Notes under the pieces: generated by a model | The model's input: only the letters and a program-made list of their open reading frames with translations | Database searches by the model: none | What the model was told of the DNA's origin: nothing | Origin: Eutreptiella sp. 'Long Island Sound 2002' | Taxonomy: Eukaryota; Protista; Euglenida | NCBI GenBank assembly: GCA_964036045.1 | Contig: OZ038378.1 | Coordinates: 163,928,001 to 163,992,000, forward strand | Length of the DNA: 64,000 nucleotides | Reading direction: 5' to 3' | Program-made: the position numbers and the translations under genes | Shown: positions 3,301 through 27,075 of the stretch, piece after piece | Numbering within the stretch: position 1 is the stretch's first letter | Layout: each line of letters opens with the position of its first letter

Positions 3301-3334
<34 letters not shown>

Positions 3335-3438: not shown

Positions 3439-3477
<39 letters not shown>

Positions 3478-3495: not shown

Positions 3496-3875
3496 TGTAG
3501 TATACAATACAGTACAATACAAACAGTGGGTGCACACTTGGAGTATTTGCCAGAGCAATCTTCAGATCCTGCAGCGCAAACTGCAGCTCAGACCAGGATC
3601 AGACACTAACACACGCAACACACAGCAACACACAGACAGGACGCATTCAGCGACTGGTGCTCGGGGCTCACTGCAACCTGGGTTCAACCAAGTCATCCCT
3701 CTCCATCAGCGAGCACCTTGGTGTGACGTCTCACTGACATCGCTAACTTCTTGGAGGGGTAAGCCGCTGCACCAAGGGTCCAGTCGCTCAGTACACGCAG
3801 CACAGAGGTACAAGCAGTACTATGCAGCAGTACACAGCACACCTGTAACACACCAGTAACCGGTATATTGCCCTC

Positions 3876-3945
3876 CACACACACACACACACACACACAC
3901 ATACGCACACAAACACACAACAACGGCAACAACAGCAACAACAAC
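3876..3945. repeat. (CA)n followed by degenerate (CAA/CAG)n
   Basis: Directly visible. Confidence 0.9.
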
Positions 3946-4170
3946 CTTGCCCCTGCTGGCCACTGCTGAGTGCATCTGCAGCGTCCACAAGCGGTTTGTC
4001 CAATCAGTCCTTCTGCCTTCAACAGTAATGGATGCGATCGCAAGTGTCGTCACAATGACGGAGACCACGACAAGCGCTTTGCAGACCACCCCCACACTGC
4101 TGCACAGACGAAATGGGGCGGGGGTCGGCCGCAGCTGCGGAGGCGGTGGAGGGGAGGTGGATCCCTCAAG

Positions 4171-4859
4171 GGGGGAATGTTTGCCCGGTGCGCTACTTTT
4201 CTATTAACTATCCCAACTTCAGCCCCAGATTTACCCTCTCATGGAGAAGCCCCCCAAGTAGACCACGTTGCACTGCACAACTTCCCTACAAAGCACATTG
4301 CATAATAAAGCAATAGCTGTGAATTCAACAACTCCAAATGTCATTTGTATTGTACTTAACAAACAACATTGGTCCCACAAGTGTGGATGTCAATACATTC
4401 AGCACAATAGTGCCCTTCACACTCACCACCAACTGTGATGGTGGAACGCTTCTGACAACACAACACACACACTTCTGCCTCATCCTCTGCCTCATCCTCT
4501 GCCTCATCTTGCGTGGTGGCCGGGTTGCTTTTGTTAGTCAAAACTTGAGGCGGGACATGCTCCCATGGTCCATAGGGGGGGGGGGGGGTGACGCGGGGTC
4601 TCCATGGTGGGGAGAAATCAATATGGCTACATCATCCCTGCCTTCTCGGGGTCCACATGGTGAGGAGAAATGAACCTAGTAAGGAGTGGATGTGGTGGAA
4701 ACGAGCAAAAAATGGATGAAAATGGGTGAAACTGGGTGAGAATCCAAATATACATCAAAACGCCCGTTTTCAAACAACAATGCACCCCCTGAAAGGTCAC
4801 CGGTGGGGCACGGGTCAAAAAAGATGCCCGGCGCGTGCCCGGAGCGCTAACACTCCCCC
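4171..4859 (-). mobile_element. Non-autonomous TIR element, member A of the 'GGGGGAAT...CCCCC' family (689 bp)
   Basis: Left end GGGGGAATGTTTGCCCGGTGCGCTACTTTT and right end GCGCTAACACTCCCCC align with the ends of 11894-12607. 4680-4790 is a diverged homolog of 12400-12510. Flanked by AAG at 4168-4170 and 4860-4862. Confidence 0.7.
4356..4541 (-). pseudogene. Cargo coding fragment: (DEAE)3 acidic repeat plus Cys/His-rich putative Zn-binding motif
   Basis: QDEAEDEAEDEAEVCVLCCQKRSTITVGGECEGHYCAECIDIHTC, ending in TAA; no convincing start codon. Confidence 0.45.
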
Positions 4860-7249
4860 AAGGACCCCACAAAAACCTCCCCCTGCCCCCAGATCTGTTC
4901 CATCTCCAGACCATTGACACGACCGCTTTGTTGATGGGCATCCGTTGTGTCGTTCGGCCTGGCCCGGCGTTGCGACCCTCGGGCCTCCCCTTTGTCTGCG
5001 GCCCCTCTTCCCTCTGCCGTATATCGTTTGCCACACGTCCTGCCCTCTATCTTCGGTACACAGATACAGTGCACCCGGACGGTGTGGGTGCCCTGTGCGG
5101 TGCGCAGAGTGTGCGGGTGGGGGATGCAGTGCAGTACCCAGTACAGTGCGCTGGGGTGCACCGTGTGCCAAGCGCAGCGCGTGTGGCGCGTGGAGGGCAT
5201 GGGGGCGTGTGCGGGAGTCGATCAACATCCACGTCACCCCGTCCGCCTTTGCACAAGTGCACCCGACAGGGGTCGCACTACGTGGACAAGGCCGGTCCTG
5301 CGCATGCCCCGCGGCACGACAAAAGAAGGGCCTGAAACACGGAGACCCTGTGGCCTCCGGGCCTCCATCCCTCTGCACTGCGTACACACCCATGTCACGC
5401 TACACTCGCAACCGCAGAGGCTGTGGTCAGAAAGACGGCGGCATGATGGGGTCACAGGGACAGGGCCGTTCTCACGCAAAAAGGAGCTGCAAACACATTC
5501 AACAGCATAGGGCGGGTCTACAGCAGGGCAATGGCGTACTTAGACCATAGATGCTCAGTCCCGTCAGAGTCTTCGCTCTCAGTGACAATGCTTTGTGCAT
5601 TGAGCTCGTCTATACGTACAATGCCTCTCCGATCGGTCGGTTATTGACTCCTCCCTCTCATACTTTGTGTTGTGTCGCTCCATTTTGTTTTTTGTCCGCC
5701 CTTAGGCGTGCATGCACTCACTGGGGAAGGCACCTGGACGTCTCTAGAGGTCTTGCATAATGCTAGCACCCGATTGGCCAAACTTCTAGTTCTGTCCCTT
5801 GGTATTTTGCTTCTAGTCTAACCCTATCCGTCCCTCCCTGGGTCAGGTGGTTTACAATGACATAAAGGGGGGGGGGGTCTTGACATGGCCTTGGGTTCCC
5901 CCAGCGCACATGCTCCACTTTTGTTGTGCCCCCCCCCCCCCCCCCCCGTGTGACATTTCGTCGGGTTGCGGTTTCTTTACGGGGCACTGGACAGTCAGTC
6001 ACCTGCTCGTCCCTCCGCGTACTGCCTCCGGGCAGTGCTTTGTGACGGGCAGTGTTCCCTGTGGTGTCTTTGCCGCGCTGGCAGGGACCAGCAGTCGCAG
6101 CACTGAGGCTGTGCTGGCTGTCGCGGGGGCGTTTGACGGTGAGTGCTGCCCAGTCCCCTCCACGTCCGGGTTGTCCACATGCCTCCCCGCGTTTCTGTGT
6201 GTGTGAGGCTGAAGTCCCCCCCTCCCAGCCCCCGTCGCCCGCCTCGGAACACGCGTGCGGCTGCCCCATTCGGTCAGACATGGAACGGCATCCCTTGCGC
6301 CTGCGCCTGCGGGGGAGCGGGGGGGTTGGACCGCCATCGTGCACTCTCCGGGGCCGCTGTGCCAGGCCGTGTGTGTGTGACGCCACAGTATTCAATCAAA
6401 GCTCAAACTGCACGGTTCAACAGACCTAAATGCCTCCCATTGATCAGCTGCGCACACGTGTGTCTGTGCCAAAGCATCAATTCCAATCATAGCTCAAAGT
6501 GTGAGGTTCAACAATCCTACATTCCTACCGCTGCTGCAAACCATGAGTTCAATGGTCCGCCCTGCAGGGGGGCTGCCCTGATGAGCGAATGGCGCCATAT
6601 GCACAAGCACCGCAAACACACCACGGCTTCCAGCCCCTCAAACCACCCCAGGGAGCATCAAGACACACATGCATGTGCATGCATGTGTGCTCTACCTCTC
6701 CCCGCGTCCCCATCCCACGCATGCGTGTGTGTGTGCGCGCGCGTGCGGGGAAGAACAATATTACAGAGGGAGGCCTGCATGGGTCCAGGGCCCCCAGCGG
6801 TCGCCTGTGTGCGCGCGCGTGCGGCGCGTCCCCTGTGCTGCCGGGGCCATCGCCTGGGGCCCGGGGTAGGGCGTGCGCGCCGGACCCCACGGCGGTGTGG
6901 TCATGTGCGTAGGGGTGTCGACCTGGAATGCGGTGCGGCCCATGGCCCATTGGTCCGTACGGCGTCCGGGTATCCCCAGTGCAGCGTGCCTCCGGGTGGG
7001 GCCGACAGCACGCGGCTTGCGTGCGAGGCTGCCATGCAGCGGACTTATGACATGGCGCTGAGCAGGTGGGCGAAACAACGGGACCCCATGTGCCACAGGG
7101 GCAACCGGGCTTGCAATTGGGGGGGGAGTGGGGTCGATAGAGCCCCCTGGCTAGACCCACATCCCCCCCAAAAAGGGGCTGAATTGACAGGACACCCAAA
7201 ATCCTAACGAGACTGACCCCCGGGCCTCAGAGGTGACCCAGACCCAAAA

Positions 7250-7460
7250 ATCGGCACAAAATGAAAATGGGATTTTTGGAATCAGCGTGTCGAGAAGGTT
7301 CAGAAAAGTCATCATTTGCCATGTATTTGGTGAAAAAAAATTTTTTGACCATTTGTGATGCTCAAAAAAATTATCGGCGCCTTCGGCGCCAGTGATGTCT
7401 GATTCATGGTGCCAGTCAATTGAACCCTTTTCCCAGCCCCCCCCCCCCCCCCCCCGCCCC
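7250..7460. repeat. Putative dispersed repeat related to 740-860 (opposite orientation)
   Basis: GGCGCC-TTC-GGCGCC, A/T runs and a terminal C-run; boundaries uncertain. Confidence 0.3.
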
Positions 7461-8989
7461 AAGATTTTGGGGGCTCTATTGACCCCACCCCGCCCTCACT
7501 TGCAAGCCCGACATGCCCAGAGGCCATTCATCGAATGCGCATGTATGACAGGCATTGGTGTCCCCATGTATCTTCGATGTGGTAGGCGGCCCACACCAAC
7601 CACCCCCCCCCCGCCCGCCCGCCACCAAATTGGGCCAGACATCACAAAGCACCACATCCACCAATGGGTCTTGGAGCGCACCCAGCGATGGTTGTTCTGA
7701 AACGAATTTGTGCCAAGTGCATCTTGTGGCATGGCAAATGAGCAATGGACGTTGACGCGGGCCGCACTGTTTGTGGACGTGGCAGTTTGTGATCAGTGTC
7801 TTGCACTTTGCATTGGGCACTTCATGTCAACCCGGTGTCTGATTTAGCCATTCAGGGATTTGTGGCGTCCCAATCTAATTGGAAAGTGGGGTCGATGCAT
7901 CACAATGGTTCGTGCCACGACCGGTTCCATGCATATTGCGTGGACACTGTGCTTGGGAGGCACATTCTGCATGCCACACCACGAAGCCTCCTGCCCAACC
8001 GGCCTGGCAACAGGGTGGGCAATAGTAGGCAGGCCATTCTAGTGCAGCAGTTGAGCACCACACAAAACCTTGTTCATCAACCACATATGCCGACCGGTAA
8101 TCGCCCTTTTGAGAAAAATTGTGTGTTCGTTTTGGCTCGATTCCTTCCTATACGACATGGAAACCCTTCAACACTTGAAATCGTCGGCACACCAACTCAA
8201 CTCCAAAGATTGCATTTGCCAAGGCAAATTGCCCTGGAATGAGGACAAGAGGCTGTCAAGGTCAACACTGGTGTAACACGTATCTTTGTGTTCTGCACAG
8301 TGCACACAAACTCCGTTTGCCTCCACAACATCCAAGCCAAAGCAATGGCATCATTTTTGGGTGTGCACCATTTTTCGGGTGCGCTTGTGATCCCACTCAC
8401 CTGCAGCAATTGTACCAAGGAAACCACTCTTCTCATGATGACGCCTGGATACAGGTTGCTCTTTGGCTCTCGCGAGGTTGCAGCTGTGTGAGAACGCTTG
8501 CTCTTTGTAGCTTTGCTGCACGCTGCTCTGCAGCTATTCTCCATTTGTGTCTTGTATGTGACATCAAGGGACCGCGCGACAATCTACAACTTTACAATCA
8601 CATATGAGTACATGGGCATCTTGTATGGTGCTTGTTTGCCCACTCGCACAAAAGAGGTGTTGGAGGACAGGGGGAGGGGGCTACGTTGACTTGCCAGCCG
8701 TCAAGGGCCATGTTGGGCCATTTTGAAGGATGTTGAAGGTGCTCTCCTCTGGCTACTCGCACTCTGTCTTGCTTTCGGCTTCATCAAGGCGGTAGCGTGC
8801 GGACCCATCTTGCTTGTGCCTGCGTCCGCAAGGTCTTGCCACTGCCAGTGAAGTTGGAGGCCGAGGATGCAGAGTTTGTGTCACGTCGAGGTCACCAATT
8901 GCTTTGGTCGTTGCAATTGCCATCGGTGTTCAAAGAGGCTTTTCATATTCAGAATGGCCTCAAAAGGTCGGGTGTGGACCCGCCACTTA

Positions 8990-9393
8990 CCCCCCCCCCC
9001 CTTGTATAAGCTACGCTAATGTCCCAAATTACTACGGTCCCTACGCCTACTGTAGCTTGGACACGGGCGTAGCTTGCGCGCCACAGATACAACTACCAAC
9101 ACCGGGCGCCCAGGTTCAAAAAGAGAGGATTGCATGGTGAGCGGGTGCAAAAAAGGGGAATGTAATGCACAAACATCCCCAAAATCATAGCTATGTGGGT
9201 TCAAGTGGGCAAACACTCACAACAAATGTGTCCATGACACTATGTAGCCAGCACATTTGTCACCAAACCCATGTCTTATGTGGCTGCACTACGTTTGGTA
9301 CCAAAGTAAAATTAGGTCCCAAATTAATACGGCCCCTACGCCTACTGTAGCTTGGACAAGGGCGTAGCTTATACAAGAGGGGGGGGGGGGGGG
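8990..9393. mobile_element. MITE with TA target duplication (Tc1/mariner-type by TSD), 404 bp
   Basis: TIRs C(n)TTGTATAAGCTACGC and GCGTAGCTTATACAAGAG(n); TA at 8988-8989 and 9394-9395; internal 55-bp direct repeats at 9021-9075 and 9316-9370. Confidence 0.8.
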
Positions 9394-10649
9394 TAGTTCC
9401 AGCGGCGCCTGCCTTCACACGGCCTTCATCTCCATCTCCGTTTATAGCGTGCTCGACGTGCCATTTGACTGTCCACTGGCTCATTGTGCTTCTCCTTACC
9501 CTCCCTGACGTGGGTAAGAGACAAGGCCTGTTGGTTTCATATTCAGGATTTTGGGGGGGGCTCACAGGCAGACACTGGGAAAACGGGGCTCACAATGGGC
9601 TAAACAAAATCATCTGAGCATCTCAAGTGGTCGAAGATCACTTTTGGAAACACGCAGCTTTGATGCATTTGTGACCCTCCGAAGATGGCCGATTTTCAGG
9701 GCCGTTTCAGACTGTCGCTCAAAAAGGGCAAAACCACTTGTTTGGGTGTCCCCAATGGTCCGAGGATAATTTTGAAACAAATCATCCCCGCTTCCCCCCT
9801 GTCAGCCCATTTCTGGCTGGGCAAAGACTAGAGACTGGGCAGAGACCACATGTGCACCGGTGCAGGGTTTGGGTGTTCCGATGCGCCATTCTGAGGGGGG
9901 CACAAAAAGCGGGGGGTCGCGGGTGGACTGGGTGCAATCAGAATCGGGTTCAACAAAAACAAACCAAAACCATAGCAAGTCTCCAACAACCCACACATGA
10001 AGAAAGCAACAGTCCTCTAGGTTTTCTGTTTCCCAAAGAACAACACTGTCGCAAGGACATGTTACAGATAAGAAAGAAAGCATGAACTCTTGTGGGTTTG
10101 TCCAAGCAGCTTTTGCAACCCGAATTGTGCATCATGCGTGGACCCAGGGCACCATCCCTGGGTCATAACCACCTGCATACCCATAACCCCCCCCAAAAAA
10201 AATTAGTACCCCCCAAAACTTATTACCCCCTGGCCCTATTGAGCAATCTGCCACAATTAGCACCCCCTTGAGCCTCCCAAGCAACGGAACACGAACCAAC
10301 CGACAAGTCACACTTTTCAGAGCCGCGAGCGTCACTTGAAGAATGAAGTCAGTTTCATTAGGTTTTTTGTATTGGAAACACTAGCAGAGCATGGGCCACA
10401 TCTGCAGAAGCATCTGCATTAGCTCCATCAGCCCCTGTTACACGGGAAAATCACAGGTGGCATGAACCCGCCCAAAATGAGTAGCCCCCGCCCACCCCAA
10501 AATTAGCACCCCCCCGAAATTAGTACCCCCCCCAGCCTTATTGAGCATTCTGCCGAAGTTAGTACCCTAGGGTGCTAAATTTTTTTTGGCGGGGGCTTAA
10601 TTCACAAGAGTGGGCCACGACAGCACACTAGGAGCTACCCCCCCATTCA

Positions 10650-11350
10650 GTGTCCACTAGCAAGTATGAATCCTCAACACCTTGCATGACCCTATGGATG
10701 CAACGCTTTGCAAAAACAGGGGGAGGGGGGGCGGTTGTCTGGGCATATGAGGGCAAAGCAAGCCCTGTGCCTAGCCTTGCTAGTGCACCAACATACGGAT
10801 GGCGCCATGCTGCGTCGATTGGACATTGCCAAGAATACCCCAGTATGCTACACCCTTGCTTCCTCAGGGCTCTGCGTCTTTTGGGTGCGCCCACCACCAC
10901 ATCCACTCCCTGGTGCCTGCCACCTACCAAGGTGGCATTGGGGCCCAAGGCGATGTCAGCGAGGCATCAAAGAGGGATGCCTGCGGTCGCCACCAATGTT
11001 CGTACTTGTGCACCAGGCGTTTCACGCCACTCTGGCACGCAAATTCGCTAAGTATAACCACCTTGGTGGATGTCGATGACGCTGCCATCATAACGCCCAA
11101 GTAGTGGGTCTGGAAACATGTCCAACAGTTATTGGTGGTGTCAGGCCTTCACACCAACTGCTCCAAGAAGCAAATCTGTCGCTGGGCCCCCACTACCTCG
11201 ACGTCTTGGCCCGGCCCGGTGTGCAGAGCCACACTTTGACACCCTACATTGGCCTACCCCCGTGGCAAAAGATACGAGCCAGAGCCATGCAGCAGCACGC
11301 AGTGCACAGGCAGTGCAAACATATTTGCATCTGTCATCACTAGTTGCTTT
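10650..11350 (+). pseudogene. Decayed non-LTR retrotransposon reverse transcriptase (LINE-B head, copy 1)
   Basis: Frameshifted RT motifs: LDIAK (domain 3), GIKEGCLRSPPMF (domain 4, cf. GxxQGCPLSP), VDVDDAAII (YxDD position), PYIGLP (cf. YLG). Confidence 0.8.
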
Positions 11351-11893
11351 CATAGCCACAATATGACACATGATTTGAAAACGATATCTTAATTCGGCAG
11401 CGTGGTACTGCCTACATGCGACTTGACTGTCTGTCCTATTTCCCAGTGCAACTGTGATCAAGCACTCCTTTGGCTCTCAGTATCGTGGGCGTCCACGGGG
11501 GCAAAGGAGCCATGTGACACGTGGGCAGCAGTCTGATACCAGGTTCCAATGTCATCAACGATAAAAAATCTTGTGGGGGCAAAAGGAGTGGCAGCAGGAA
11601 GGTCGGGTTCTCAGGGTATGACCTGGCGAGCTGGGCTTGCTCAGAATAACCCGGCCAGCATGTGTCCCTAGTCATTGATCTGCAGCAAAAATGATTTTGG
11701 GCGCCGGCGCTCAACTGGTGGACAAGATGACTTATTGCACTTTGGCATGAGACGCCTTGATATGCACATGGCATGAAACCTGTCACCACCCTCTTCACAC
11801 CAATGAGGTATGCAACACATCCTGACCACAGGTGAGGGTCACCTGGCGACAGTGGAAATCAGAGAGACTGTGTGTGATATCACTTGCATCTTA

Positions 11894-12607
11894 GAGGGAA
11901 TCCTTCCACTGCGCGCGCACGGCGCGCTACTTTTAGACTATGTTCCCCCCGAAGAGCCCCTAGGCATGCCCCTTGGAAACACTGTTAGAATTAGGCAACC
12001 CAAACTGGACTGGAGGGGACCTTGAGGGGGACCTTCCCGGTTCTTGTGGCAGTGGTGAAGGACCAGGGGCCTTTGGGGGGGGACTTGACTGTGTATTGGG
12101 CGGCGGAGATGGAGGGCAGTCAGGTGGCGAGTCTGAACTTGGGATGGCAAAGGAGATGGACTCCATCTTGCATCGCCAATTCACCACTCTCAACCCATCT
12201 TGGAAGTATTCCAAGTGGAGGAGTCCATCTTCAGCCGTCCCAACCACTGTGGCAGGAGGTCACGGGCCATTGGAGCGGATGTAGAGCACCCTATCCCCAA
12301 TACTGAGATCCATGGAGAAAGTGGGCCTGACAAATGAGGAGGGAAGTATGACATCCCGTAGCAGGCACCCTCAAAGTGTATCAACATATCAATCAACCAA
12401 GAAAAAGAGTAGATGTGGTGGAAATGGGGGAAAAGTGTGTGCAAAAAAGTAGAAATGGGTGAAACAGGGTGAACATCCAAAAATGCCAGATCCCCAATGC
12501 AACAATGATGCCCAAAGTACCACAAAGTATGGGTTTCTACTACGGCCAAACGCTCAAATAGTTGCACTGCGCGCGCACTGCACGCGCACTGCGCTTAAGG
12601 CGCCCCC
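11894..12607 (-). mobile_element. Non-autonomous TIR element, member B (714 bp), TTA TSD; copies at 16405-17110, 19843-20547, 29255-29967, 35998-36685, 45586-46168 (left-truncated) and 48882-49569
   Basis: Ends GAGGGAAT...GCGCCCCC flanked by TTA (11891-11893, 12608-12610); subterminal direct GCACTGCGC repeats at both ends. Removing it rejoins the LINE frame (...DITCIL|AGLLPTDLL...). Confidence 0.85.
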
Positions 12608-13551
12608 TTAGCTGGCTTGTTGCCCACTGATCTCCTGCAGTCCATTGGGCAGGGGTACAATGCGCTGAAAAATTCTGCAGCTGACTTCTGGTGACAAATT
12701 CTGGACCAACCAGACAAAAACGTTACGCGCTGGTGTGCTCCGTGCCAGAACGTGCTCACAAGTCACCACAAAGTGTTTGCATGGCACATGTTAGCACAGT
12801 GGGACCGTGGGGAATGCAAAGCGTGGTTCCTTTGGTTCTGATACTGCATGGTACCCTCATCCCATGCGACTGGCCCAGGCATAAGAGGCCTTGGGCTTGA
12901 TCTTGTTTGGAAAAAAAATGGCAGGAGCGGTGCTGTTGCGTACATTGTGATTTGCCATGCAGGCATTCAGGAGAAAATGAAATTCTTGCAGCAATGTCCA
13001 CTTAGAATAGTACTGGCTGCCATCTTTGGAGAAAAAGGTTCTCTGGGGCCAAATGAAACCAGCCGCCAGACTGATCCGGTGTCAAGTATCCAGCCAGCTA
13101 ACCGCATCCTGGAGATACCATACAACATTTGATGCTAAATGCTACTCTATCCAACATCTTTGGAGAAAAAGCTTCTCTGGGGATACCATACACCATTTGA
13201 GCTCGTCCAAGGGGGTGGGCGGCAAAGCAATACTTACAAAAAAAAGAGCGGCACCGAGCAGGAACGTAAGAAGCGGTTCCGGAGGCTGCGAAAATGGAAT
13301 GAGACATCCACATGGAAGATGGCTGCAAACATCGCTTGTTTGCTACCTTGTACTGCAGGACTGCTACAGTTGGGCTTCCAAAAGTGGGAACCTAGCACAT
13401 TTTGGAAATACCAAGTCCTGAACACCAGACACCGAGCGACACGCCACACAAACCAGGCATCATCAGCTTTGCTAAAGCTGTATGCTGAGGCCCAACTGGT
13501 GCAGGTGGGCCCGACGCCTTTCTGGCATGGCGATGCCTTTTACGTGACAAT

Positions 13552-13600
13552 GCACTAAAGATGCACTGACTGACTGACTGACTGACAACGCACTAAAGAT
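13552..13600 (+). mobile_element. 27-nt (CTGA)n insert between 11-bp direct repeats; copy at 30911-30959
   Basis: GCACTAAAGAT-[GCACTGACTGACTGACTGACTGACAAC]-GCACTAAAGAT. Confidence 0.6.
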
Positions 13601-15723: not shown

Positions 15724-18700
15724 CCACACTTTGACACCCTACATTGGCCTACCCCCGGCTGTAAGAAAACCCGTGGCAAAAGGTACAAGCCAGAGCCATG
15801 CAGCAGCACGCAGTGCACAGGCAGTGCAAACATATTTGCATCTGTCATCACTAGTCGCTTTCATAGCCACAATATGACACATGATTTGAAAACGATATCT
15901 TAATTCGGCAGCGTGGTACTGCCTACATGCGACTTGACTGTCTGTCCTATTTCCCAGTGCAACTGTGATCAAGCACTCCTTTGGCTCTCAGTATCGTGGG
16001 CGTCCACGGGGGCAAAGGAGCCATGTGACACGTGGGCAGCAGTCTGATACCAGGTTCCAATGTCATCAACGATAAAAAATCTTGTGGGGGCAAAAGGAGT
16101 GGCAGCAGGAAGGTCGGGTTCTCAGGGTATGACCTGGCGAGCTGGGCTTGCTCAGAATAACCCGGCCAGCATGTGTCCCTAGTCATTGATCTGCAGCAAA
16201 AATGATTTTGGGCGCCGGCGCTCAACTGGTGGACAAGATGACTTATTGCACTTTGGCATGAGACGCCTTGATATGCACATGGCATGAAACCTGTCACCAC
16301 CCTCTTCACACCAATGAGGTATGCAACACATCCTGACCACAGGTGAGGGTCACCTGCTGACAGTGGAAATCAGAGAGACTGTGTGTGATATCACTTGCAT
16401 CTTAGAGGGAATCCTTGCACTGCGCGCTACTTTAGACTATGTTCCCCCCGAAGAGCCCCTAGGCACGCCCCTTGGAAACACCGTTAGAATTAGGCAACCC
16501 AAACTGGACTGGAGGGGACCTTGAGGGGGACCTTCCCGGTTCTTGTGGCAGTGGTGAAGGACCAGGGGCCTTTGGGGGGGGACTTGACTGTGTATTGGGC
16601 GGCGGAGATGGAGGGCAGTCAGCTGGCGAGTCTGAACTTGGGATGGCAAAGGAGATAGACTCCATGTTGCATCGCCAATTTTTCTCGGTTGATTGATATG
16701 GTGATACACTTTGAGGGTGCCTGCTACAGGATATCATACTTCCCTCCTCATTTCTCAGCCCCACTTTCTCCATGGATCTCAGTATTAGGGGTTAGGGTGC
16801 TCTACACCCACTCCAATGGCCTGTGACCTCCTGCCACGGTGGTTGGGACGGCTGAAGATGCACTACTCCACTTGGATTACTACCAAGATGGGTTGAGAGT
16901 GGAGAAAAAGAGTAGATGTGGTGGAAATGGGAAAAAAATGTGTGCAAAAAAGTAGAAATGGGTGAAACAGGGTGAACATCCAACAATGCCAGATCCCCAA
17001 TGCAACAATGATGCCCAAAGTACCACAAAGTATGGGTTTCTACTACGGCCAAACGCTCAAATAGTTGCACTGCGCGCGCACTGCACGCGCACTGCGCTTA
17101 AGGCGCCCCCTTAGCTGGCTTGTTGCCCACTGATCTCCTGCAGTCCATTGGGCAGGGGTACAATGCGCTGAAAAATTCTGCAGCTGACTTCTGGTGACAA
17201 ATTCTGGACCAACCAGACAAAAACGTTACGCGCTGGTGTGCTCCGTGCCAGAACGTGCTCACAAGTCACCACAAAGTGTTTGCATGGCACATGTTAGCAC
17301 AGTGGGACCGTGGGGAATGCAAAGCGTGGTTCCTTTGGTTCTGATACTGCATGGTACCCTCATCCGATGCGACTGGCCCAGGCATAAGAGGCCTTGGGCT
17401 TGATCTTGTTTGGAAAAAAAATGGCAGGAGCGGTGCTGTTGCGTACATTGTGATTTGCCATGCAGGCATTCAGGAGAAAATGAAATTCTTGCAGCAATGT
17501 CCACTTAGAATAGAGCTGGCTGCCATCTTTGGAGAAAAGGTTTCTCTGGGGCCAGCTATGCGCTAAATGAAATCAGCCGCCAAACTGATACGGTGTCAAA
17601 GATCTAGCCAGCTAACCGCATCCTGGTGATACCATACAATATTTGATGCTAAATACTACTCTATCAAACGGAGGTGCACGTGCCAACACAGGCAGGTGCG
17701 GTGCTAATTCTGCTCACAAAAACTGTGGCTATCAACGTCGTTACGCTCGCGTACTTTCGGTGGTTGTGCATGCTTGTGCACGCCCTAACCCTGGAAGCTA
17801 CGCACCCTTGTGCACACTTGGGACTGACAACGCAGCAGCAGGGGCAGCAGTGACTGCAGTGAAAGCCAATCACCTTCTCAAGGGGCTGTCCTTATATGAT
17901 AGTTGGCGCTGGTGCGAGTATAACCAGTGGCCCAAATGGCCAAAAGGCCCAACCCCCAAAACCAAAACCGGGTGCTGACAGAAGTAGCTATTGCTATTGC
18001 TGCCGCAACCACTCCACCCTGACAACGCTACTCTACGCAAAGGAGGTGCATCTGCCCACTATGCAGGCATGCAGGCAGGTGCAAATTCTGGTTATAAGAA
18101 CTGTGGCTCGAAACGTCGTTGGGCACGCGTACTTTCTGTGGTTGTGCATGCTTGTGCACGCCTAACCCTGGAAGCTACGTGCACACTTGGGACTGACAAC
18201 ACGGCAGCAGGGGCAGGAGGTCACTGTGGTGAAAGCCACACACTTTCTCCAGGGGTTCTTCTCATACAATCGCAGGTGCCGGTGGAATTTTTGTTGAAGC
18301 GCAACGTGTGCTTCAGCCCCCCTGCCATCCTGCATTGGGTAAATTCATTTGCTGACCAACGTGTGGACATGCCTCAGATAAGGGCCCAAGTCTCTACTCC
18401 TGGATGACAGGGCTACCACAGTGCCCTGTGGTCCAGGCAACTTCTTCGTACTATGCTTGCTGCCAGAATATGTCAAGCTGCCACTGCACGCTCGCCTCGA
18501 AATTAAAATCAATCGTATACCACATTGATATGGCGCGAACATATGATGTTCGTTGGACAAAGGCGTGCATTGGACTTCAGAAACTGTGCCACATATGACC
18601 TCCTTTCCATAAAATCATGGCTAACCACAGAAGCCACCCAAAACTTAGGGTCTTAGACTCATACTCGGAGTATTCCTGAGATGAGCCAAAGCTCATCACC

Positions 18701-19161
18701 GGTGGCCTTGGCCACTGGTCGCTCACGTAACATGGATTGTTCTGAATATTGTTTGCTGTTGTAGGCAACATCTCAGTGCCAAAAAAAGGCTGCGCGCGAC
18801 GCAGCCTGTGACTCGTGTGCATGCATGCATTAGTATGTCGACAGAATTCGATGTATAGAGCAGGTACAAGCAGTTAAGCGTACTGTCAATTTGTCAATCA
18901 AACAGCGAGACATTGCGCTGTGACCTACAGGTGTGCATGGATGCATTCAACGCGCATGCATGGACAGCAGACACATTGACCCGATACGCCCCTGGTCACG
19001 CCACAGACGGCCATGTGGCACACGATATGCTTCGGTCTGTACACGCATCTACTTTGTGTTTGCAAATGCTACCGAAAAAAGCGGGGAAAGCAGAATGAAA
19101 CTGCGAAGCAAGGCTCCCATGCTCCAATCAAATCAACCACGGAAGCGCAGATTCACGTATG
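15724..19161 (+). repeat. T unit T2 (short form, 3438 bp)
   Basis: Period 3437-3438 seen in ORF recurrences (e.g. 15475, 18913, 22350). Confidence 0.9.
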
Positions 19162-22100
19162 CCACACTTTGACACCCTACATTGGCCTACCCCCGGCTGT
19201 AAGAAAACCCGTGGCAAAAGGTACAAGCCAGAGCCATGCAGCAGCACGCAGTGCACAGGCAGTGCAAACATATTTGCATCTGTCATCACTAGTCGCTTTC
19301 ATAGCCACAATATGACACATGATTTGAAAACGATATCTTAATTCGGCAGCGTGGTACTGCCTACATGCGACTTGACTGTCTGTCCTATTTCCCAGTGCAA
19401 CTGTGATCAAGCACTCCTTTGGCTCTCAGTATCGTGGGCGTCCACGGGGGCAAAGGAGCCATGTGACACGTGGGCAGCAGTCTGATACCAGGTTCCAATG
19501 TCATTAACGATAAAAAATCTTGTGGGGGCAAAAGGAGTGGCAGCAGGAAGGTCGGGTTCTCAGGGTATGACCTGGCGAGCTGGGCTTGCTCAGAATAACC
19601 CGGCCAGCATGTGTCCCTAGTCATTGATCTGCAGCAAAAATGATTTTGGGCGCCGGCGCTCAACTGGTGGACAAGATGACTTATTGCACTTCGGCATGAG
19701 ACGCCTTGATATGCACATGGCATGAAACCTGTCACCACCCTCTTCACACCAATGAGGTATGCAACACATCCTGACCACAGGTGAGGGTCACCTGCTGACA
19801 GTGGAAATCAGAGAGACTGTGTGTGATATCACTTGCATCTTAGAGGGAATCCTTGCACTGCGCGCTACTTTAGACTATGTTCCCCCCGAAGAGCCCCTAG
19901 GCATGCCCCTTGGAAACACCGTTAGAATTAGGCAACCCAAACTGGACTGGAGGGGACCTTGAGGGGGGCCTTCCCGGTTCTTGTGGCAGTGGTGAAGGAC
20001 CAGGGGCCTTTGGGGGGGGACTTGACTGTGTATTGGGCGGCGGAGATGGAGGGCAGTCAGCTGGCGAGTCTGAACTTGGGATGGCAAAGGAGATAGACTC
20101 CATGTTGCATCGCCAATTTTTCTCGGTTGATTGATATGGTGATACACTTTGAGGGTGCCTGCTACAGGATATCATACTTCCCTCCTCATTTCTCAGCCCC
20201 ACTTTCTCCATGGATCTCAGTATTAGGGATAGGGTGCTCTACACCCACTCCAATGGCCTGTGACCTCCTGCCACGGTGGTTGGGACGGCTGAAGATGCAC
20301 TACTCCACTTGGAATACTACCAAGATGGGTTGAGAGTGGAGAAAAAGAGTAGATGTGGTGGAAATGGGAAAAAGGTGTGTGCAAAAAGGTAGAAATGGGT
20401 GAAACAGGGTGAACATCCAAAAATGCCAGATCCCCAATGCAACAATGATGCCCAAAGTACCACAAAGTATGGGTTTCTACTACGGCCAAACGCTCAAATA
20501 GTTGCACTGCGCGCGCACTGCACGCGCACTGCGCTTAAGGCGCCCCCTTAGCTGGCTTGTTGCCCACTGATCTCCTGCAGTCCATTGGGCAGGGGTACAA
20601 TGCGCTGAAAAATTCTGCAGCTGACTTCTGGTGACAAATTCTGGACCAACCAGACAAAAACGTTACGCGCTGGTGTGCTCCGTGCCAGAACGTGCTCACA
20701 AGTCACCACAAAGTGTTTGCATGGCACATGTTAGCACAGTGGGACCGTGGGGAATGCAAAGCGTGGTTCCTTTGGTTCTGATACTGCATGGTACCCTCAT
20801 CCCGTGCGACTGGCCCAGGCATAAGAGGCCTTGGGCTTGATCTTGTTTGGAAAAAAAATGGCAGGAGCGGTGCTGTTGCGTACATTGTGATTTGCCATGC
20901 AGGCATTCAGGAGAAAATGAAATTCTTGCAGCAATGTCCACTTAGAATAGAGCTGGCTGCCATCTTTGGAGAAAAGGTTTCTCTGGGGCCAGCTATGCGC
21001 TAAATGAAATCAGCCGCCAAACTGATACGGTGTCAAAGATCTAGCCAGCTAACCGCATCCTGGTGATACCATACAACATTTGATGCTAAATACTACTCTA
21101 TCAAACGGAGGTGCACGTGCCAACACAGGCAGGTGCGGTGCTAATTCTGCTCACAAAAACTGTGGCTATCAATGTCGTTACGCTCGCGTACTTTCGGTGG
21201 TTGTGCATGCTTGTGCACGCCCTAACCCTGGAAGCTACGCACCCTTGTGCACACTTGGGACTGACAACGCAGCAGCAGGGGCAGCAGTGACTGCAGTGAA
21301 AGCCAATCACCTTCTCAAGGGGCTGTCCTTATATGATAGTTGGCGCTGGTGCGAGTATAACCAGTGGCCCAAATGGCCAAAAGGCCCAACCCCCAAAACC
21401 AAAACCGGGTGCTGACAGAAGTAGCTATTGCTATTGCTGCCGCAACCACTCCACCCTGACAACGCTACTCTACGCAAAGGAGGTGCATCTGCCCACTATG
21501 CAGGCATGCAGGCAGGTGCAAATTCTGGTTATAAGAACTGTGGATCGAAACGTCGTTGGGCACGCGTACTTTCTGTGGTTGTGCATGCTTGTGCACGCCT
21601 AACCCTGGAAGCTACGTGCACACTTGGGACTGACAACACGGCAGCAGGGGCAGGAGGTCACTGTGGTGAAAGCCACACACTTTCTCCAGGGGTTCTTCTC
21701 ATACAATCGCAGGTGCCGGTGGAATTTTTGTTGAAGCGCAACGTGTGCTTCAGCCCCCCTGCCATCCTGCATTGGGTAAATTCATTTGCTGACCAACGTG
21801 TGGACATGCCTCAGATAAGGGCCCAAGTCTCTACTCCTGGATGACAGGGCTACCACAGTGCCCTGTGGTCCAGGCAACTTCTTCGTACTATGCTTGCTGC
21901 CAGAATATGTCAAGCTGCCACTGCACGCTCGCCTCGAAATTAAAATCAATCATATACCACATTGATATGGCGCGAACATATGATGTTCGTTGGACAAAGG
22001 CGTGCATTGGACTTCAGAAACTGTGCCACATATGACCTCCTTTCCATAAAATCATGGCTAACCACAGAAGCCACCCAAAACTTAGGGTCTTAGACTCATA

Positions 22101-22598
22101 CTCGGAGTATTCCTGAGATGAGCCAAAGCTCATCACCGGTGGCCTTGGCCACTGGTCGCTCACGTAACATGGATTGTTCTGAATATTGTTTGCTGTTGTA
22201 GGCAACATCTCAGTGCCAAAAAAAGGCTGCGCGCGACGCAGCCTGTGACTCGTGTGCATGCATGCATTAGTATGTCGACAGAATTCGATGTATAGAGCAG
22301 GTACAAGCAGTTAAGCGTACTGTCAATTTGTCAATCAAACAGCGAGACATTGCGCTGTGACCTACAGTTGTGCATGGATGCATTCAACGCGCATGCATGG
22401 ACAGCAGACACATTGACCCGATACGCCCCTGGTCACGCCACAGACGGCCATGTGGCACACGATATGCTTCGGTCTGTACACCTATCTACTTTGTGTTTGC
22501 AAATGCTACCGAAAAAATCGGGGAAAGCAGAATGAAACTGCGAAGCAAGCCTCCCACGCTCCCATCAGATCAACCACGGAAGCGCACATTCGCGTACG
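19162..22598 (+). repeat. T unit T3 (short form)
   Basis: Near-identical to T2, including the internal inversion. Confidence 0.9.
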
Positions 22599-22967
22599 TC
22601 GACTCCAATCGACGTGGCTGGTCTGAGAAGGGCTGACAGCATTGGGCAGCCCAGGCGCCTCCCGAATTCATTCCTTAGGGCAAACCACTCAGAGGCGGGG
22701 ACCTGGGTGTGCCGCAGTTCTGCAAGTGTCAGCAAAATATTATCTACATGATCAGATTTCAACAACTGTGCGGGCGGCAAACAACGAGCAGACGTATCGA
22801 TACACTTGCTCTTGAGGCATATACCATTGCACCCCTTGGGGTGGAGATGGACATCGATTCCAGGACTACAGAAAGCCAGCCAAACAGTTTAGTGTGTGGA
22901 GTGTGCGGTGCCGTGTCGTTTGGAGCCGAAAATAGGTCGTTCAGCAGTAAAATCAAGAGCTTTTACT

Positions 22968-23006
22968 GGAGGAGGAGGACGAGGAGGAGCAGCAGCAGCA
23001 GCAGCA
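22968..23006. repeat. (GAG)n(CAG)n trinucleotide run; copies near 39110, 57147 and 57665
   Basis: Directly visible; length varies among copies. Confidence 0.9.
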
Positions 23007-23254
23007 GTGCATGGTGGTGCATGACATTGGCTGCCGGTTTTTTTGTAGAATGTGTGACGCCATGTGCCACACTCTGCGCGCTGCGTGCGGCGCTCTGCGC
23101 GGCAAGGTGCTGCTCCGCACGTGCACGTGGTGGTCAGCACCGTGCGGTCAGAGACATGGACTGCTTGGCGGGTCTGGCAATGGAACCAGGTCATTGTCAG
23201 AAACCCCCAACCCAGGATCGCTTTGGTATATAAGTGTTACACTGCACAGACATA

Positions 23255-23820
23255 CCTTACCCCCCCCTTGTAATCTGTCCCCCAATGTCGTGACGGTTCC
23301 CCCCCTGGGGGGGGGGGGGGGGCGAATTGCACCACCAAACCGTAACACTTCAAAACTGCAGCTGTGCATGCACAACACCGGTAGTGTGAATCACATTGAA
23401 CCATGATGTTACTTCTGTGCGCGTGCCCCCTCCACAGGCACTGTGTGAAACTTCTTTTTCCGACTCCAAACAACCTTGAACTCCTGGACATGCTCAGCGG
23501 GCAATTCAGGTTTAGGCTGAGGATTGGAAGACGAGGTAGGCTGTGCAGCTCGGTTTCCAGCTCTTTTGGCAGCTGGTTTGGCTGGCTGGGACTTGACAAA
23601 GAAATGTCAAAGTAGCGTTCCCCCCCCGGGGGGAGGGATTTGTGTCTCCAACCTCCTCCCTGCAAAGCCAAAACTGCCAGCACTGCTGTCACTGATCTGT
23701 AATGTCTCCGGTCAGTCCATGTACAACTCTACCCATACCAAATAAATACAAACAGTCCTGAGCCGGAATGCAAAACAGATGTTTTTGGCAAAAAAATTGG
23801 ATTTCAATGGGGGGGTAAGG
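23255..23820. mobile_element. MITE-like element with TA TSD (566 bp); copy at 39393-39959, right-end fragments at 57.3-57.96 kb
   Basis: TIRs CCTTACCCCCCC...GGGGGGGTAAGG; TA at 23253-23254 and 23821-23822. Confidence 0.65.
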
Positions 23821-23920
23821 TAATACGGGTGCGGACGGGAACGAGCCGTCCACCAGCTGCCTTCAGAAGCAGGGGTGACATACAATTGGTGTCTTTCCGC
23901 ATATTAGCTCCATTTGAGCC

Positions 23921-23975
23921 ATTCAGTCAGTCAGTCAGTCAGTCACTCACTCATTCACTCACTCAGTCACTCATT
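23921..23975. repeat. (TCAG)n(TCAC)n tetranucleotide run; copies near 40061 and 58061
   Basis: Directly visible. Confidence 0.9.
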
Positions 23976-24830
23976 CGCGGACCCACTCACTCTCCTTGCG
24001 GTCCTCCGTTGGGAACGGGGGGGGGGGGGGGGCATCCTGAAAAAGCGCCCCATCCCCCCAGCCCCCGCCCCCGCCCCTTTGGATGCACTTCATTACAGGT
24101 CTCTTTGGCGTGCGACGCATGTGGGGCGGACCGATTTCGTTACGTTCTTTGGTGCTTTGCGTTCCCATTGCCAACAACTGCAGGTCAATTCCGGAGAGGC
24201 ATCCAACAGCGGAACCAAAACCTACAAAACGTGCCGGCGTGGGTGGCATGTCCACTGCGTCCATGTGGATTAGCCATGGGCGCCCACACCCGGAATGACA
24301 AGGGATTCAAAAGAGCAAAAGACATTTGGAACTGAAAACTTAAAGCTGTCCTCAGTAAAAGAAATCACTGGCCAGACCATCGCATTGCCCAGAACCTCAG
24401 CTCACCAAAATCTGCAAAACAATCATTGAAGAACATTCCTGCAACTTACTGAGCCCTTTATTCACGACATGTGCAGTTGAACCCCTCCCCAAACCCAGTG
24501 GCCAACATTGGAACCAGGAAGATCGAAGTATTCAGCCTGCGCCCAGATTCAAGGATGGCATGCTCCGTCAGGTGGCTCCCCCTCCCACAGCTGTCAGCCC
24601 AAAGCCTGACATTTCATGGAGAACTCCGTTGTAAAGAATACCTCTGGCAGCGCAATGGACTTATGGAGCCAGTGGCGGTGTTGCCATTACCCCGGGATTG
24701 CGCGAGGCAATGCACACAGACACCAGCACAACGGTACAGAGGCACAGGCATATACAATGCCACAAGCAGTGGCCAAGACAGCAGCAGTGGTTGCAGGGGG
24801 GCTAGGCACAACTGTGTGTTTGGCCGTACT

Positions 24831-25211
24831 CTACCGGGCCTTCCGCGATGCCTCCAGCTCTTTCGCCAGTTGGTCAACAAATGCGTCGGCTTCACGCTGA
24901 AGCTGGCGTTGGTGCTGTCGCCTCATCGTCCTCATCTGCAGCCGCATCGTGGCGATGTCATGCTCAAGCTGCTGATTGGCCTCCTGGAGGCGCAGGGCTT
25001 CGAGCTCAAGATCGTTCACGGTGTTCTTCCGACGTCGCCGGCCCTTCTTCTTTGGGACCTGTTGCCCGGATGCTGCCACGCAGGTGTCTTCTTTCAATTG
25101 AACAGGACTGTCCTCGAAAGTCTTGGAAGACGACCGCAGAGGGAACTCGCTGGAGATATTCCTCAGCAACATGTCTGTTGTGCCGCGAGCAGAGGTTCGC
25201 ACAGCATGCAT
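24831..25211 (-). CDS. Putative 126-aa basic/leucine-zipper (bZIP-like) protein or exon, copy 1
   Basis: KKKGRRRRKNTVNDLELEALRLQEANQQLEHDIATMRLQMRTM has L-L-L-M-M heptads and Asn at a zipper 'a' position; a pyrimidine tract + CAG lies 3 nt before the ATG. Confidence 0.5.
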   Translation of the reverse strand: MHAVRTSARGTTDMLLRNISSEFPLRSSSKTFEDSPVQLKEDTCVAASGQQVPKKKGRRRRKNTVNDLELEALRLQEANQQLEHDIATMRLQMRTMRRQHQRQLQREADAFVDQLAKELEASRKAR

Positions 25212-25293
25212 CGGCTGAAGAACATGGGAGAACGGGATGAGGCCGTCATCGTGAGGGAAATCAGGCACACAATGCAACACAGACAGCACCAAA

Positions 25294-25503
25294 CTGCAGC
25301 CGCCTGAAACTGGAAAAAACGGCCGAAAATAAGAAAAATGCAGCCACCCGAAACTGGCAAAAACGGCCGAAAATAATACAAATGCAGCCGCCCAAAAAAT
25401 TGTCAGAACAGCCAAAAATGATAAAAATGCAGCCGCCTAAAAAATGGCCCAAACGGCCGAAAACAATAAAGATGCAGCCACGCGAAAAAAAGCCAAAACG
25501 GCC
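25294..25503. repeat. Degenerate ~44-45-bp tandem array (core AAATGCAGCCGCC...AAACGGCCGAAAATAA), ~5 units; copy at 41438-41647
   Basis: TGCAGCC recurs at ~25295, 25339, 25383, 25428 and 25473. Confidence 0.85.
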
Positions 25504-26298
25504 CCCCATCAGCCCTACCAGAACCCCCCTCCCAAGCCCCCCCCCCCCCCCCCAAGGGGGCCTCCGGCCAATGGTTAGTGGGGGAGCAATGGTCGGTTCT
25601 GATAGACTGAATGTCCCCGCCATAGACACTTTCAGCCATTAGTCCAAAGGTTCACGTATTGATCACAGCACACAATGTGTCCCCTTCTTGGTTGGGGTGC
25701 TCCACTATCTATGTACACCTTTCCGTATGAAGTACAGTGGGTAAATGTTGAACATCTACGTGTTTGGTACATTAGGGCGTCCGTTCATTAGTTAGCGTCA
25801 CCCACCAACGGCAGGCTCTATGCTATTGCATGCTCTCCATTCTCGGGTGCAATGCATGGCACTCATTCGGCCTTCCCGTGCATGGAGGCTATTCAGCTTC
25901 AAAGGGAAGGTATTACATACAACTGGCACTTTGACAAACTTGATCGACCGCAGGTGGATTCGGAGTGTTTCTAGGAGAATCTCCTAGAGAGGTTTGCACC
26001 CACCACCCTCCCACAGTGCCGGTTAGTCTCTAACCTCTCGCTCTGCGGGTCTCTCTCTCTCCGACCTTTCACTCTGCGGGCCTCTCTCTCTCTGTGTTTC
26101 GTTCTCTTCACCCTCCCAAGGGGGTTTGTCCTTCTCCTTACCCTCCCAAGGGGGTTTCTCTTCCTCTTCACCCTTCCCACGGGTTTCTCTCTGTCCCTCT
26201 CTTCCCTGTGTCTCTACCTCGTCTTACCCCCCCCTCTGCTTGCCGGTTCAACTCAGGCATATCGCCGTTCGCATGACGGCGTGCTCAGCAACGTGTAA

Positions 26299-27075
26299 AG
26301 GAGAGCCTTAAGCGCAGTGCGCGTGCAGTGCGCGCGCAGTGCGCGCGCAGTGCAACTATTTGGGCGTCCGGCCGTACTAGAGACCCATACTTTGAGATAC
26401 TAGGGGCCCCTAGGGGCATCATGGTGACCTCTAGCGGAGGTTTTGACTTCTGATTCTGTCCCCCTTTGTTTGGGTGTGCCAAAGGTGATTGAGCAGATCT
26501 TGCGGTTCGGCAAGGGTAACCACTTACCAAGGGATGAAGAAAGTGTAATCATCCAGGATGGGCTTGATGGCCAACCATTCTCTGAAGGCGGCAGTAAAGC
26601 GCCAACACTGCAGCCTGCGATTGACCGTTTGCGCCGTGAGAAAAGAGAGAGAGAGGCCAAGAAACAAGCAAAACATGCGCAGCAGTTCCTAGAAAAGCGG
26701 CAACGCACACTGGATGCTTTTTGTGTTGCTGCGCCCCCTCGGGCCGATGTGGCTTCTTCCAGCTCCAATCTCCCTGAACCCTCTCAGTCCTCGCAACCCC
26801 CCGTGGCTACACAATCTCAACCCCAATCCGATTCTAACCGCAAGGGAAAGGAGAGAGCCCCTTCCTCACAACCGAAACCACGCATGTGGCAGTGGGGCAT
26901 CGTAAGGAACATGTGTGTGTTATGTTAAGGGAAGGTAGTTTGCAACTTTCTTGAGCTGGGGCAGTTTGGGTCACCTAATTCTAAGGGCGTTTCCAAGGGG
27001 TGTGCTTGGGGGCTCTTCGGGGGGAACATAGTCTAAAAGTAGCGCGCAGTGCGCGCGCAGTGCAAAGATTCCCCC
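26299..27075 (+). mobile_element. Non-autonomous TIR element, member C (~777 bp), opposite orientation to member B
   Basis: 26305-26400 and 26960-27075 are reverse complements of member B's two ends; absent at paralogous sites 43921-43940 and 63460-63480. Confidence 0.85.
26443..26928 (+). pseudogene. Cargo ORF of member C: charged helical segment plus S/P/Q-rich tail
   Basis: IDRLRREKREREAKKQAKHAQQFLEKRQRTLDAF...SSQPPVATQSQPQS; reads as a protein C-terminus. Confidence 0.5.

Follow-up and report, generated by a model that had tools for sequence, protein, structure and literature searches.

The closest described systems are the PIF/Harbinger elements of rice, where the autonomous Ping and Pong occur together with mPing, a Tourist-like MITE that is a deletion derivative (general description, PMC2836001). 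In Ectocarpus, Harbinger families carry tail-to-tail genes with TNA or ANT duplications, and an LTR retrotransposon, Gypsy-10_Ec32, carries a Tudor reader domain (PMC12477816). In the literature searched, we found no description of Harbinger elements from Euglena, and euglenid DNA transposons are almost undescribed there. The window studied here, the whole stretch of 64,000 nucleotides that was analysed, comes from an apparently euglenid genome of 2.28 Gb. It contains three short elements, A, B and C, which are very probably non-autonomous internal-deletion (MITE-like) derivatives of a large PIF/Harbinger-type family in this genome. The three are as follows:

4171–4859, minus strand: element A, 689 bp, non-autonomous, CCGGG-motif lineage; the transposase sense is the minus strand
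11894–12607, minus strand: element B, 714 bp, non-autonomous, CAGTG-motif lineage
26299–27075, plus strand: element C, 777 bp, young, non-autonomous, CAGTG-motif lineage; the transposase sense is the plus strand

The limits that an earlier note had assigned to these elements were confirmed. The target-site duplications are AAG for A (4168–4170 and 4860–4862), TTA for B (11891–11893 and 12608–12610) and TAA for C (26296–26298 and 27076–27078). Each element represents a high-copy family, with more than 5867 first-look candidates genome-wide for A, more than 3413 candidates in the genome for B and more than 1649 for C. Copies of B on other chromosomes are 88–92% identical, and copies of C are 96–99% identical.

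All three elements are bounded by GGGGG...CCCCC and have related ends and 3-bp duplications, in agreement with the proposal that they share short termini. B and C align over 112 bp at one end (89% identity, E 6e-38) and over 83 bp at the other (88%, E 6e-25), while the same comparison found their interiors to be different. The termini of A are GGGGGAAT...CCCCC, with an end layout like that of B and C. A and B share an internal stretch of 94 columns (~83–94 bp) that is ~70% identical, and long elements of the A lineage show ~190 bp of left-end homology to B at 70%. The shared termini exceed chance by far, with 1302 exact genome matches to a 27-nt end pattern (0 for the reversed control) and 2098 to a 22-nt pattern of the other end (0 for the control).

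The perfect inverted part of the termini is limited to GGGGG(A). Beyond it, the likeness of the ends lies mainly in near-palindromic 11-bp units. These have one and the same orientation at the left and right ends of an element (33 of 33 checked for either end, 0 opposite), as had been claimed for direct-orientation subterminal motifs. In B/C, the unit is GCGCAGTGCGC, a palindrome of odd length, so that its "direct" orientation is set by the central base only. The unit occurs in the forms GCGCAGTGCGC, GCGCCGGGCGC and GCGCTGTGC, and its core is lineage-specific, being CAGTG in B/C and CCGGG in A, with TGTG as a third type. We considered whether the unit is strictly palindromic, with changes that compensate each other from lineage to lineage, and dropped this because the third common variant, GCGCTGTGC, is non-palindromic (100 sampled genome hits). 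Full-length elements carry the unit only in the outermost ~45 bp of each end. The arrays of element C are:

26312–26355, plus strand: left-end array of the 11-bp unit GCGC(G/A)CAGTGC
27042–27065: matching right-end array of the same unit

A perfect 3-bp duplication was found in 46 of 52 independent insertions. The length suggested for the duplications was thus right, but the suggested TWA specificity found no support: TAA or TTA accounts for only 10 of the 46 (22%), and A has AAG. TNA duplications make up 15 of 46 (33%), a looser pattern than the classic one. The duplications are biased toward T at position 1 (63%), A or T at position 2 (78%) and A at position 3 (48%). The data for the A lineage come from five elements and the window copy.

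On chromosome 1, exact 5' end patterns were paired with exact 3' ones, which revealed a length series of 366–3627 bp with the same ends and led to the long parents. The termini of L081 (4492 bp, duplication CTT), L083 (4456 bp, ATA), L085 (4315 bp, TCT), L089 (3333 bp, TAT) and L082 (2973 bp, TGA) are identical to those of the short elements, and their 3-bp duplications are perfect. Full-length parents of the B/C lineage measure 4.3–4.5 kb; the coding elements of the A lineage are shorter, ~1.9–2.0 kb and up to ~2.9 kb. In L085, GGGGGA and 7 nt are followed by the 11-bp unit in one to four copies, variable tandem repeats of 171 bp and 46 bp, ORF1 (Tudor-like), the transposase (DDE_Tnp_4 core and Cys-rich tail), same-strand 11-bp units and, finally, ~12 nt ending in CCCCC. 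ORF1 is truncated in L081. The full-length copies are 98–99% alike and their reading frames are open, so the family may still be active, as judged from these sequences.

The 658-aa ORF of the B/C-lineage long elements matches Pfam DDE_Tnp_4 (PF13359) at 31.4–34.2 bits, and the transposases of the A lineage and of L087 match it at 29.3–29.8 bits (29.6–29.8 for the A lineage); the curated cut-off is 24.8 bits. Together with the 3-bp duplications, this match supports the suggested PIF/Harbinger affinity. The A-lineage transposases are 60% identical to that of L081 over 398 aa (E 2e-168), and VDSMPI, MDGAY and RIEHLF are candidate catalytic motifs. A first look at the genome gave at least 16,825 transposase candidates. 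The first 30 DDE_Tnp_4 loci were rejected as parents: they have no similarity to A, B or C and belong to other Harbinger families. In L051, a rearranged long copy, a nested ORF weakly matches zf-RVT. A Pfam scan of ten other large ORFs in the window gave no useful match, nor did one of the ORFs of the short elements.

The middles of A, B and C do differ, as the earlier note had observed. They correspond to a transposase tail, a part of ORF1 and an N-terminal transposase segment, respectively:

4371–4580, minus strand: "Cys-rich cargo" of A, a remnant of the transposase C-terminal tail
12116–12364, minus strand: "Tudor/SH3-like cargo" of B, a decayed ORF1 remnant with an in-frame stop codon
26472–26915, plus strand: "charged-helix cargo" of C, transposase residues 118–254 fused in frame to ~545–556

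The Cys-rich piece of A has the pattern PPYGPWEHVP ... CxxCC ... CxxC ... CID.HTC. It matches residues 586–654 of the L081 transposase at 44% identity (E 1e-11, tblastn) and is 79–82% identical to A-lineage copies with open frames of 344–501 aa. The first 78 bp of A are 92% identical to L091–L096 and its last 399 bp 88–89% identical. The Cys-rich piece of A is thus the transposase C-terminal tail of a sister lineage (88% DNA identity). The piece in B matches residues 7–89 of the L085 ORF1 at 67% identity (E 7e-27, tblastn), and stop codons interrupt the ORF1 remnant in the window B copies and in L031, L036, L040 and L068. The ends of B are 84–90% identical to those of L085, L087 and L089, and its interior is only 74–76% identical to L085 and L087; the exact parent lineage was not recovered among the parents compared.

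Element C consists of four collinear L081 blocks (14–154, 2554–2966, 3837–3873 and 4315–4469) at 94–97% identity. Its cargo is 94% identical to 2554–2966 plus 3837–3873 (blastn) and 93% identical to transposase residues 118–254 (tblastn). The three deletion junctions show ~3–4 bp of microhomology, with GGG, CAC and ~CATG common to both donor sides. The charged-helix piece makes up most of a 161-aa ORF (26443–26928), which lacks the DDE core and is intact in 11 of 11 copies. Of its 21 variants, 9 are synonymous and 12 non-synonymous, which is no significant deviation from neutrality, and only ~1 stop is expected. The idea of selection keeping the ORF open was therefore dropped, as the youth of the family explains its integrity in all copies. 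A weaker idea is that this always-intact truncated transposase may act as a regulator.

The earlier note had also counted B seven times. The window copies of B with an intact end all agree in their flank and in the TTA duplication, and they sit within segmental duplications of 3.4–5.6 kb. They therefore represent one insertion multiplied by segmental duplication, not seven insertions. The duplicates are:

16405–17110, minus strand: B duplicate with a 228-bp internal inversion (16680–16906) and one 11-bp end unit fewer
19843–20547, minus strand: B duplicate with the same internal inversion, at 20118–20343
29255–29967, minus strand: B duplicate, 98% identical, with the same flanks and TTA
35998–36685, minus strand: B duplicate, the same insertion
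45586–46168, minus strand: B duplicate lacking the first 117 bp of B, cut at the duplication boundary
48882–49569, minus strand: B duplicate, the same insertion

The finding of three different coding-looking interiors between related ends had led to the proposal of Pack-type capture, in which one set of ends repeatedly took up unrelated fragments of host genes. Mapping of the interiors contradicts this. All three cargos fall on transposon ORFs, the outcome that the earlier note itself had named as speaking against capture, and they align collinearly and in the same orientation to the ORF1 or transposase of the parents, at up to 94% DNA identity. Alignments to long elements cover A, B and C completely and leave no interior segment unexplained, and within each family the same cargo is kept across thousands of copies. 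Capture is consequently given next to no probability. The fallback that had been offered, deletion derivatives of different autonomous elements, matches the data. The direction of descent could conceivably be reversed, with the short elements ancestral and the long ones descended from MITEs that gained a transposase gene between their ends by insertion or recombination; long copies are indeed far fewer than short ones, and some, such as L051, are clearly rearranged. However, the transposase frame survives in C as three truncated fragments, separate but collinear, that are joined at microhomologies, and the ORF pieces of A and B are truncated and either lack a start or contain stop codons. It is not plausible that an intact 658-aa gene was built from such fragments, and the purifying selection on ORF1 between lineages (dN/dS 0.22) also speaks against this order of events, which we consider extremely improbable.

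It is likewise very unlikely that the family belongs to another superfamily with 3-bp duplications (Zator, CACTA/EnSpm or Academ) and that its association with DDE_Tnp_4 is coincidental. The duplications are not restricted to TWA, the terminus is perfectly inverted over a very short stretch only (GGGGG[A]), and no Myb-like ORF1 was found with Pfam, all of which would suit such an assignment. Conversely, at least 10 independent copies from two lineages have a DDE_Tnp_4 ORF enclosed by precisely these termini and duplications, Pfam detected no other transposase domain in the elements, and the termini are not CACTA.

The derivation of A, B and C from PIF/Harbinger-type parents by internal deletion agrees with the features found in them: both ends are common to the autonomous element, the interior is collinear, and an intact transposase is lacking. 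Insertion of the elements would generate the 3-bp duplication. Each short family would have retained both ends and the internal stretch spared by its deletions, which explains why the cargos differ and yet, as had been noted, share one reading direction with respect to the ends. The cargos are leftover pieces of the parent's two genes, and this points to the ordinary origin of small non-autonomous transposons rather than to gene capture. Three internal deletions with junction microhomology would have produced C from its parent, and such deletions may result from abortive gap repair or template switching. We propose that the transposase of each lineage acts in trans on the short elements belonging to it, and that its recognition targets are the termini and the lineage-specific 11-bp units, CAGTG in B/C and CCGGG in A.

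ORF1 precedes the transposase, with the same strand orientation, and encodes 219 aa in L085 and 208 aa in L087. Its dN/dS between the two lineages is 0.22, which at the sequence level shows purifying selection. The ORF1 of PIF/Harbinger elements is usually of the Myb/SANT/MADF type. Here, Pfam detected no Myb/SANT/MADF domain at E ≤ 0.1 in ORF1, the transposase or other L085 frames of at least 90 aa, a threshold at which a very divergent Myb is possible. The conserved core of ORF1 was modelled as a five-strand barrel, with Tudor domains as the best PDB matches; an ESM Atlas search gave noise-level scores only (≤0.83). The predicted fold backs the "Tudor/SH3-like" label given to the piece in B, and ORF1 looks Tudor-like rather than Myb-like in this model. 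The modelled protein could possibly be a chromatin reader or a DNA-binding barrel. One may speculate, with considerable doubt, that this euglenid Harbinger-type clade has exchanged its Myb-like helper for a Tudor-like ORF1 and uses lineage-private 11-bp units (CAGTG, CCGGG, TGTG) as recognition marks tying a transposase to the derivatives of its lineage. If true, it would have no precedent among DNA transposons, in the literature searched, as the carrier of a Tudor-type protein.

These results remove a tempting false lead, in that there is no Pack-type gene-shuffling system here, and provide a well-documented euglenid case of short non-autonomous elements arising from their parents. With thousands of exact-match ends, the family is large; it may still be active, which could matter for genome annotation. 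Testable leads on end recognition and target choice in PIF/Harbinger elements come from the end motifs of each lineage and from the Tudor-like ORF1.

Like Ping and Pong, the long elements combine a DDE_Tnp_4-type transposase and a separate ORF1 on one element and generate 3-bp duplications; like mPing, the short ones are high-copy derivatives that keep both ends, have lost the middle and are presumably moved in trans. In contrast to mPing, they are larger (~0.4–1.4 kb), form many subfamilies and retain recognisable coding pieces. The euglenid system also differs from that of rice in its target choice, which is looser than TAA/TTA, and its ORF1 has a Tudor-like predicted fold and shows no Myb-like domain. 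The nested series of deletion derivatives with the ends of the autonomous parent resembles Ac/Ds of maize. Deletion junctions of the Ds type show short microhomologies, typical of interrupted gap repair, and those of C show them as well, although Ac/Ds belongs to another superfamily (hAT) with 8-bp duplications. Pack-MULE and Pack-CACTA elements similarly combine related ends with differing coding-looking interiors, but theirs are host gene fragments unrelated to the transposon, whereas the interiors here derive from the family's own ORF1 and transposase. The Harbingers of Ectocarpus are also of protist/algal origin, have two genes and are accompanied by abundant non-autonomous derivatives; in the present family, however, ORF1 and the transposase share a strand, and the Tudor-like domain, unlike that of Gypsy-10_Ec32, is found in the ORF1 of a DNA transposon.

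Retrieval of the sequence confirmed three genuine elements at the positions reported in an earlier note on this DNA:

4171-4859, minus strand: element A
11894-12607, minus strand: element B
26299-27075, plus strand: element C

In the orientation of that note, all three start with G(G/A)GGGAAT and finish with (C/T)CCCC. B and C have 112 bp in common at one end (89%, E 6e-38) and 83 bp at the other (88%, E 6e-25), so the end similarity proposed earlier is significant by alignment; their interiors do not align. A is more distant, with a terminal layout like that of B and C, and an internal stretch of 94 columns (about 83–94 bp) aligns to B at ~70% identity. Each element belongs to its own high-copy family within this 2.28-Gb genome, with first-look candidates numbering at least 3413 for B (copies on other chromosomes 88–92% alike), at least 1649 for C (96–99%) and at least 5867 for A (82–93%). 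Exact genome matches to a 27-nt end pattern and to a 22-nt pattern of the opposite end number 1302 and 2098, respectively, and the reversed control gave 0 for both. Three C copies, L047, L048 and L049 (chromosomes 5, 20 and 3, respectively), have identical flanks and duplications; their insertion therefore lies within a different repeat or mobile unit, which spread later.

A first search for parents compared the best 30 Pfam DDE_Tnp_4 loci of the genome with A, B and C, and these were rejected, having no similarity to any of the three. In a second, exact 5′ and 3′ end patterns were paired along chromosome 1, yielding a same-termini length series of 366, 462, 491, 492, 529, 533, 543, 669, 683, 710, about 720–800, 944, 1089, 1409, 1446, 2647 and 3627 bp. 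An all-against-all comparison revealed that the short members are mosaics of the long ones. The 2.6-kb member contains a 303-aa ORF matching DDE_Tnp_4 (34.2 bits; cut-off 24.8), and a genome search with this ORF returned at least 16,825 first-look candidates, some with open frames of 617–658 aa. Extension of candidate loci gave complete elements with the termini of the series and perfect 3-bp duplications. A transposase with matching termini, proposed as a check in the earlier note, is thereby found.

Complete elements elsewhere in the genome, with their duplications and transposon genes
L081: 4492 bp, duplication CTT; transposase ORF at element positions 2204-4177
L083: 4456 bp, duplication ATA
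L085: 4315 bp, duplication TCT; ORF1 of 219 aa at L085:2508-3164, minus strand, directly upstream of the transposase
L089: 3333 bp, duplication TAT
L082: 2973 bp, duplication TGA

The right-hand 2.3 kb, the transposase part, is about 99% identical among copies; the left halves contain 171-bp and 46-bp internal tandem repeats in varying numbers. In L081, L083 and L085 the left 2 kb holds long arrays of these repeats, whose copy number varies between copies that are otherwise 98–99% identical. Nested in one 3.6-kb family member is an ORF of 645 aa (L051:1244-3181, plus strand of the locus); its zf-RVT match is weak (E 0.0026), and it is probably a fragment of a retroelement that inserted in the transposon.

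The earlier note favored Pack-type gene capture to explain the three unlike interiors, and offered deletion derivatives of different autonomous elements as its fallback. Taking the transposase sense as forward, the window carries C in forward and both A and B in reverse orientation. Four collinear blocks of L081 (14-154, 2554-2966, 3837-3873 and 4315-4469) make up C, at 94–97% identity. Given the position of the L081 ORF, C's "charged helix" is transposase residues 118–254 (93% identical), fused in frame to residues ~545–556. At its three deletion junctions, GGG, CAC and about CATG are common to both donor sides. The Cys-rich piece of A matches residues 586–654 of the L081 transposase, its C-terminal tail (44% identity, E 1e-11). 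This peptide, used as a query, led to a sister lineage whose open frames span 344–501 aa, and six such loci were fetched; A is 88–89% identical to them over its last 399 bp and 92% over its first 78 bp. The transposases of the A lineage score above the DDE_Tnp_4 cut-off and are 60% identical to that of L081 over 398 residues (E 2e-168). The Tudor-like piece of B aligns to the L085 ORF1 (67% identity, E 7e-27), and the equivalent ORF1 in L087 (208 aa, L087:3478-4101) has 74% DNA identity to B over 378 bp. Stop codons interrupt this remnant in several B copies, those of the window included, and the exact parent of B was not recovered among the long elements fetched.

Because alignments to long elements, interior and end matches together, cover A, B and C completely, Pack-type capture is refuted, by the result that the earlier note had itself named against it. 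The fallback is correct: the interiors map to ORF1 and the transposase of the parents. The common reading direction of the remnants also held, and is explained by both parental genes lying on one strand. The Pfam DDE_Tnp_4 match settles the assignment of the transposase, and A, B and C with their parents are a PIF/Harbinger-type family and its non-autonomous derivatives, a new family of a familiar sort; no paper describing Harbinger elements of Euglena was found in the literature searched. The 161-aa ORF of C is intact in 11 of 11 copies. Its variants (9 synonymous, 12 non-synonymous; about one stop expected) show no significant departure from neutrality, and its intactness is attributed to the youth of the C family.

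Target-site duplications had been described as 3-bp TWA. The length is borne out by perfect 3-bp duplications at 46 of 52 independent insertions in the window and on other chromosomes; the restriction to TWA is not, as only 10 of the 46 are TAA/TTA (TNA in 15) and that of A in the window is AAG. The bases are biased: the first is T in 63%, the second A/T in 78% and the third A in 48%. For the A family, where the data come from few copies, five loci of the A-type fetch, one of them L087 from the B/C lineage, show perfect duplications (TCT, TAT, CTC, TTA, TTA).

The subterminal motifs are 11-bp units, GCGCAGTGCGC in the B/C lineage and GCGCCGGGCGC in the A lineage. In full-length elements they occur only within about 45 bp of either end, in one to four copies, beginning 13 nt from the left terminus and finishing 12 nt from the right. 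The direct orientation claimed for them holds in that the strand is constant at both ends (33 of 33 for each). Each of the two units is a palindrome of odd length centered on a G, so its orientation is set only by that base and the array phase. Variants were sampled in the first 100 (chromosome 1) of 15,113 genome hits for a degenerate two-unit pattern; pairs of hits separated by a few hundred bases always shared a strand. The unit has a third common variant, GCGCTGTGC (14 of the 100), which is not palindromic, so palindromy is no strict rule. This variant also forms same-strand pairs at spacings from a few hundred to about 1300 bp, suggestive of a further sister lineage. We infer that the units are putative binding sites of an element-encoded protein, which would define lineage-private mobilization groups.

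The seven copies of B counted previously are present, but they are not seven insertions: all those with an intact end have identical flanking sequence and the duplication TTA. Most of the window (10289-51961) is a stack of segmental or tandem duplications of 3.4–5.6 kb, 94–99% alike, whose larger ORFs have no Pfam match. Two duplicated B copies have the same 228-bp internal inversion, its boundaries showing no obvious long inverted repeat:

16680-16906 and 20118-20343: inverted part, the ORF1 remnant

Separately, a 24-nt Euglena-type spliced-leader motif, which we take to be that of Euglena gracilis, has 3309 exact genome matches (control 0), in agreement with a euglenid host; they are dispersed over the chromosomes and not gathered in a few arrays.

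The conserved ORF1 core, ~55 aa, has a dN/dS of 0.22 between lineages (purifying selection), indicating that ORF1 is a working transposon gene. An AlphaFold model from an alignment of eleven ORF1 cores predicts a Tudor-like five-strand barrel (core pLDDT 84–89, mean 73). Tudor domains (PHF20, PHF1, SMN, TDRD3) make up nearly all of its top PDB matches, with weak E-values (from 6e-3), target-normalized TM-scores up to 0.75 and an rmsd of about 2.5 Å over 54 residues. The model is of medium confidence, and we regard ORF1 as a modest side lead. A Gypsy element reported in PMC12477816 carries a Tudor domain, the first transposable element to do so as far as the authors know. Pfam detected no Myb/SANT/MADF domain in ORF1, the transposase or other L085 frames of at least 90 aa. 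In contrast to the ORF1 proteins of PIF/Harbinger, whose Myb-like domain is presumed to bind the element ends (PMC2836001), the ORF1 described here lacks a Pfam Myb match and appears Tudor-like in the model.
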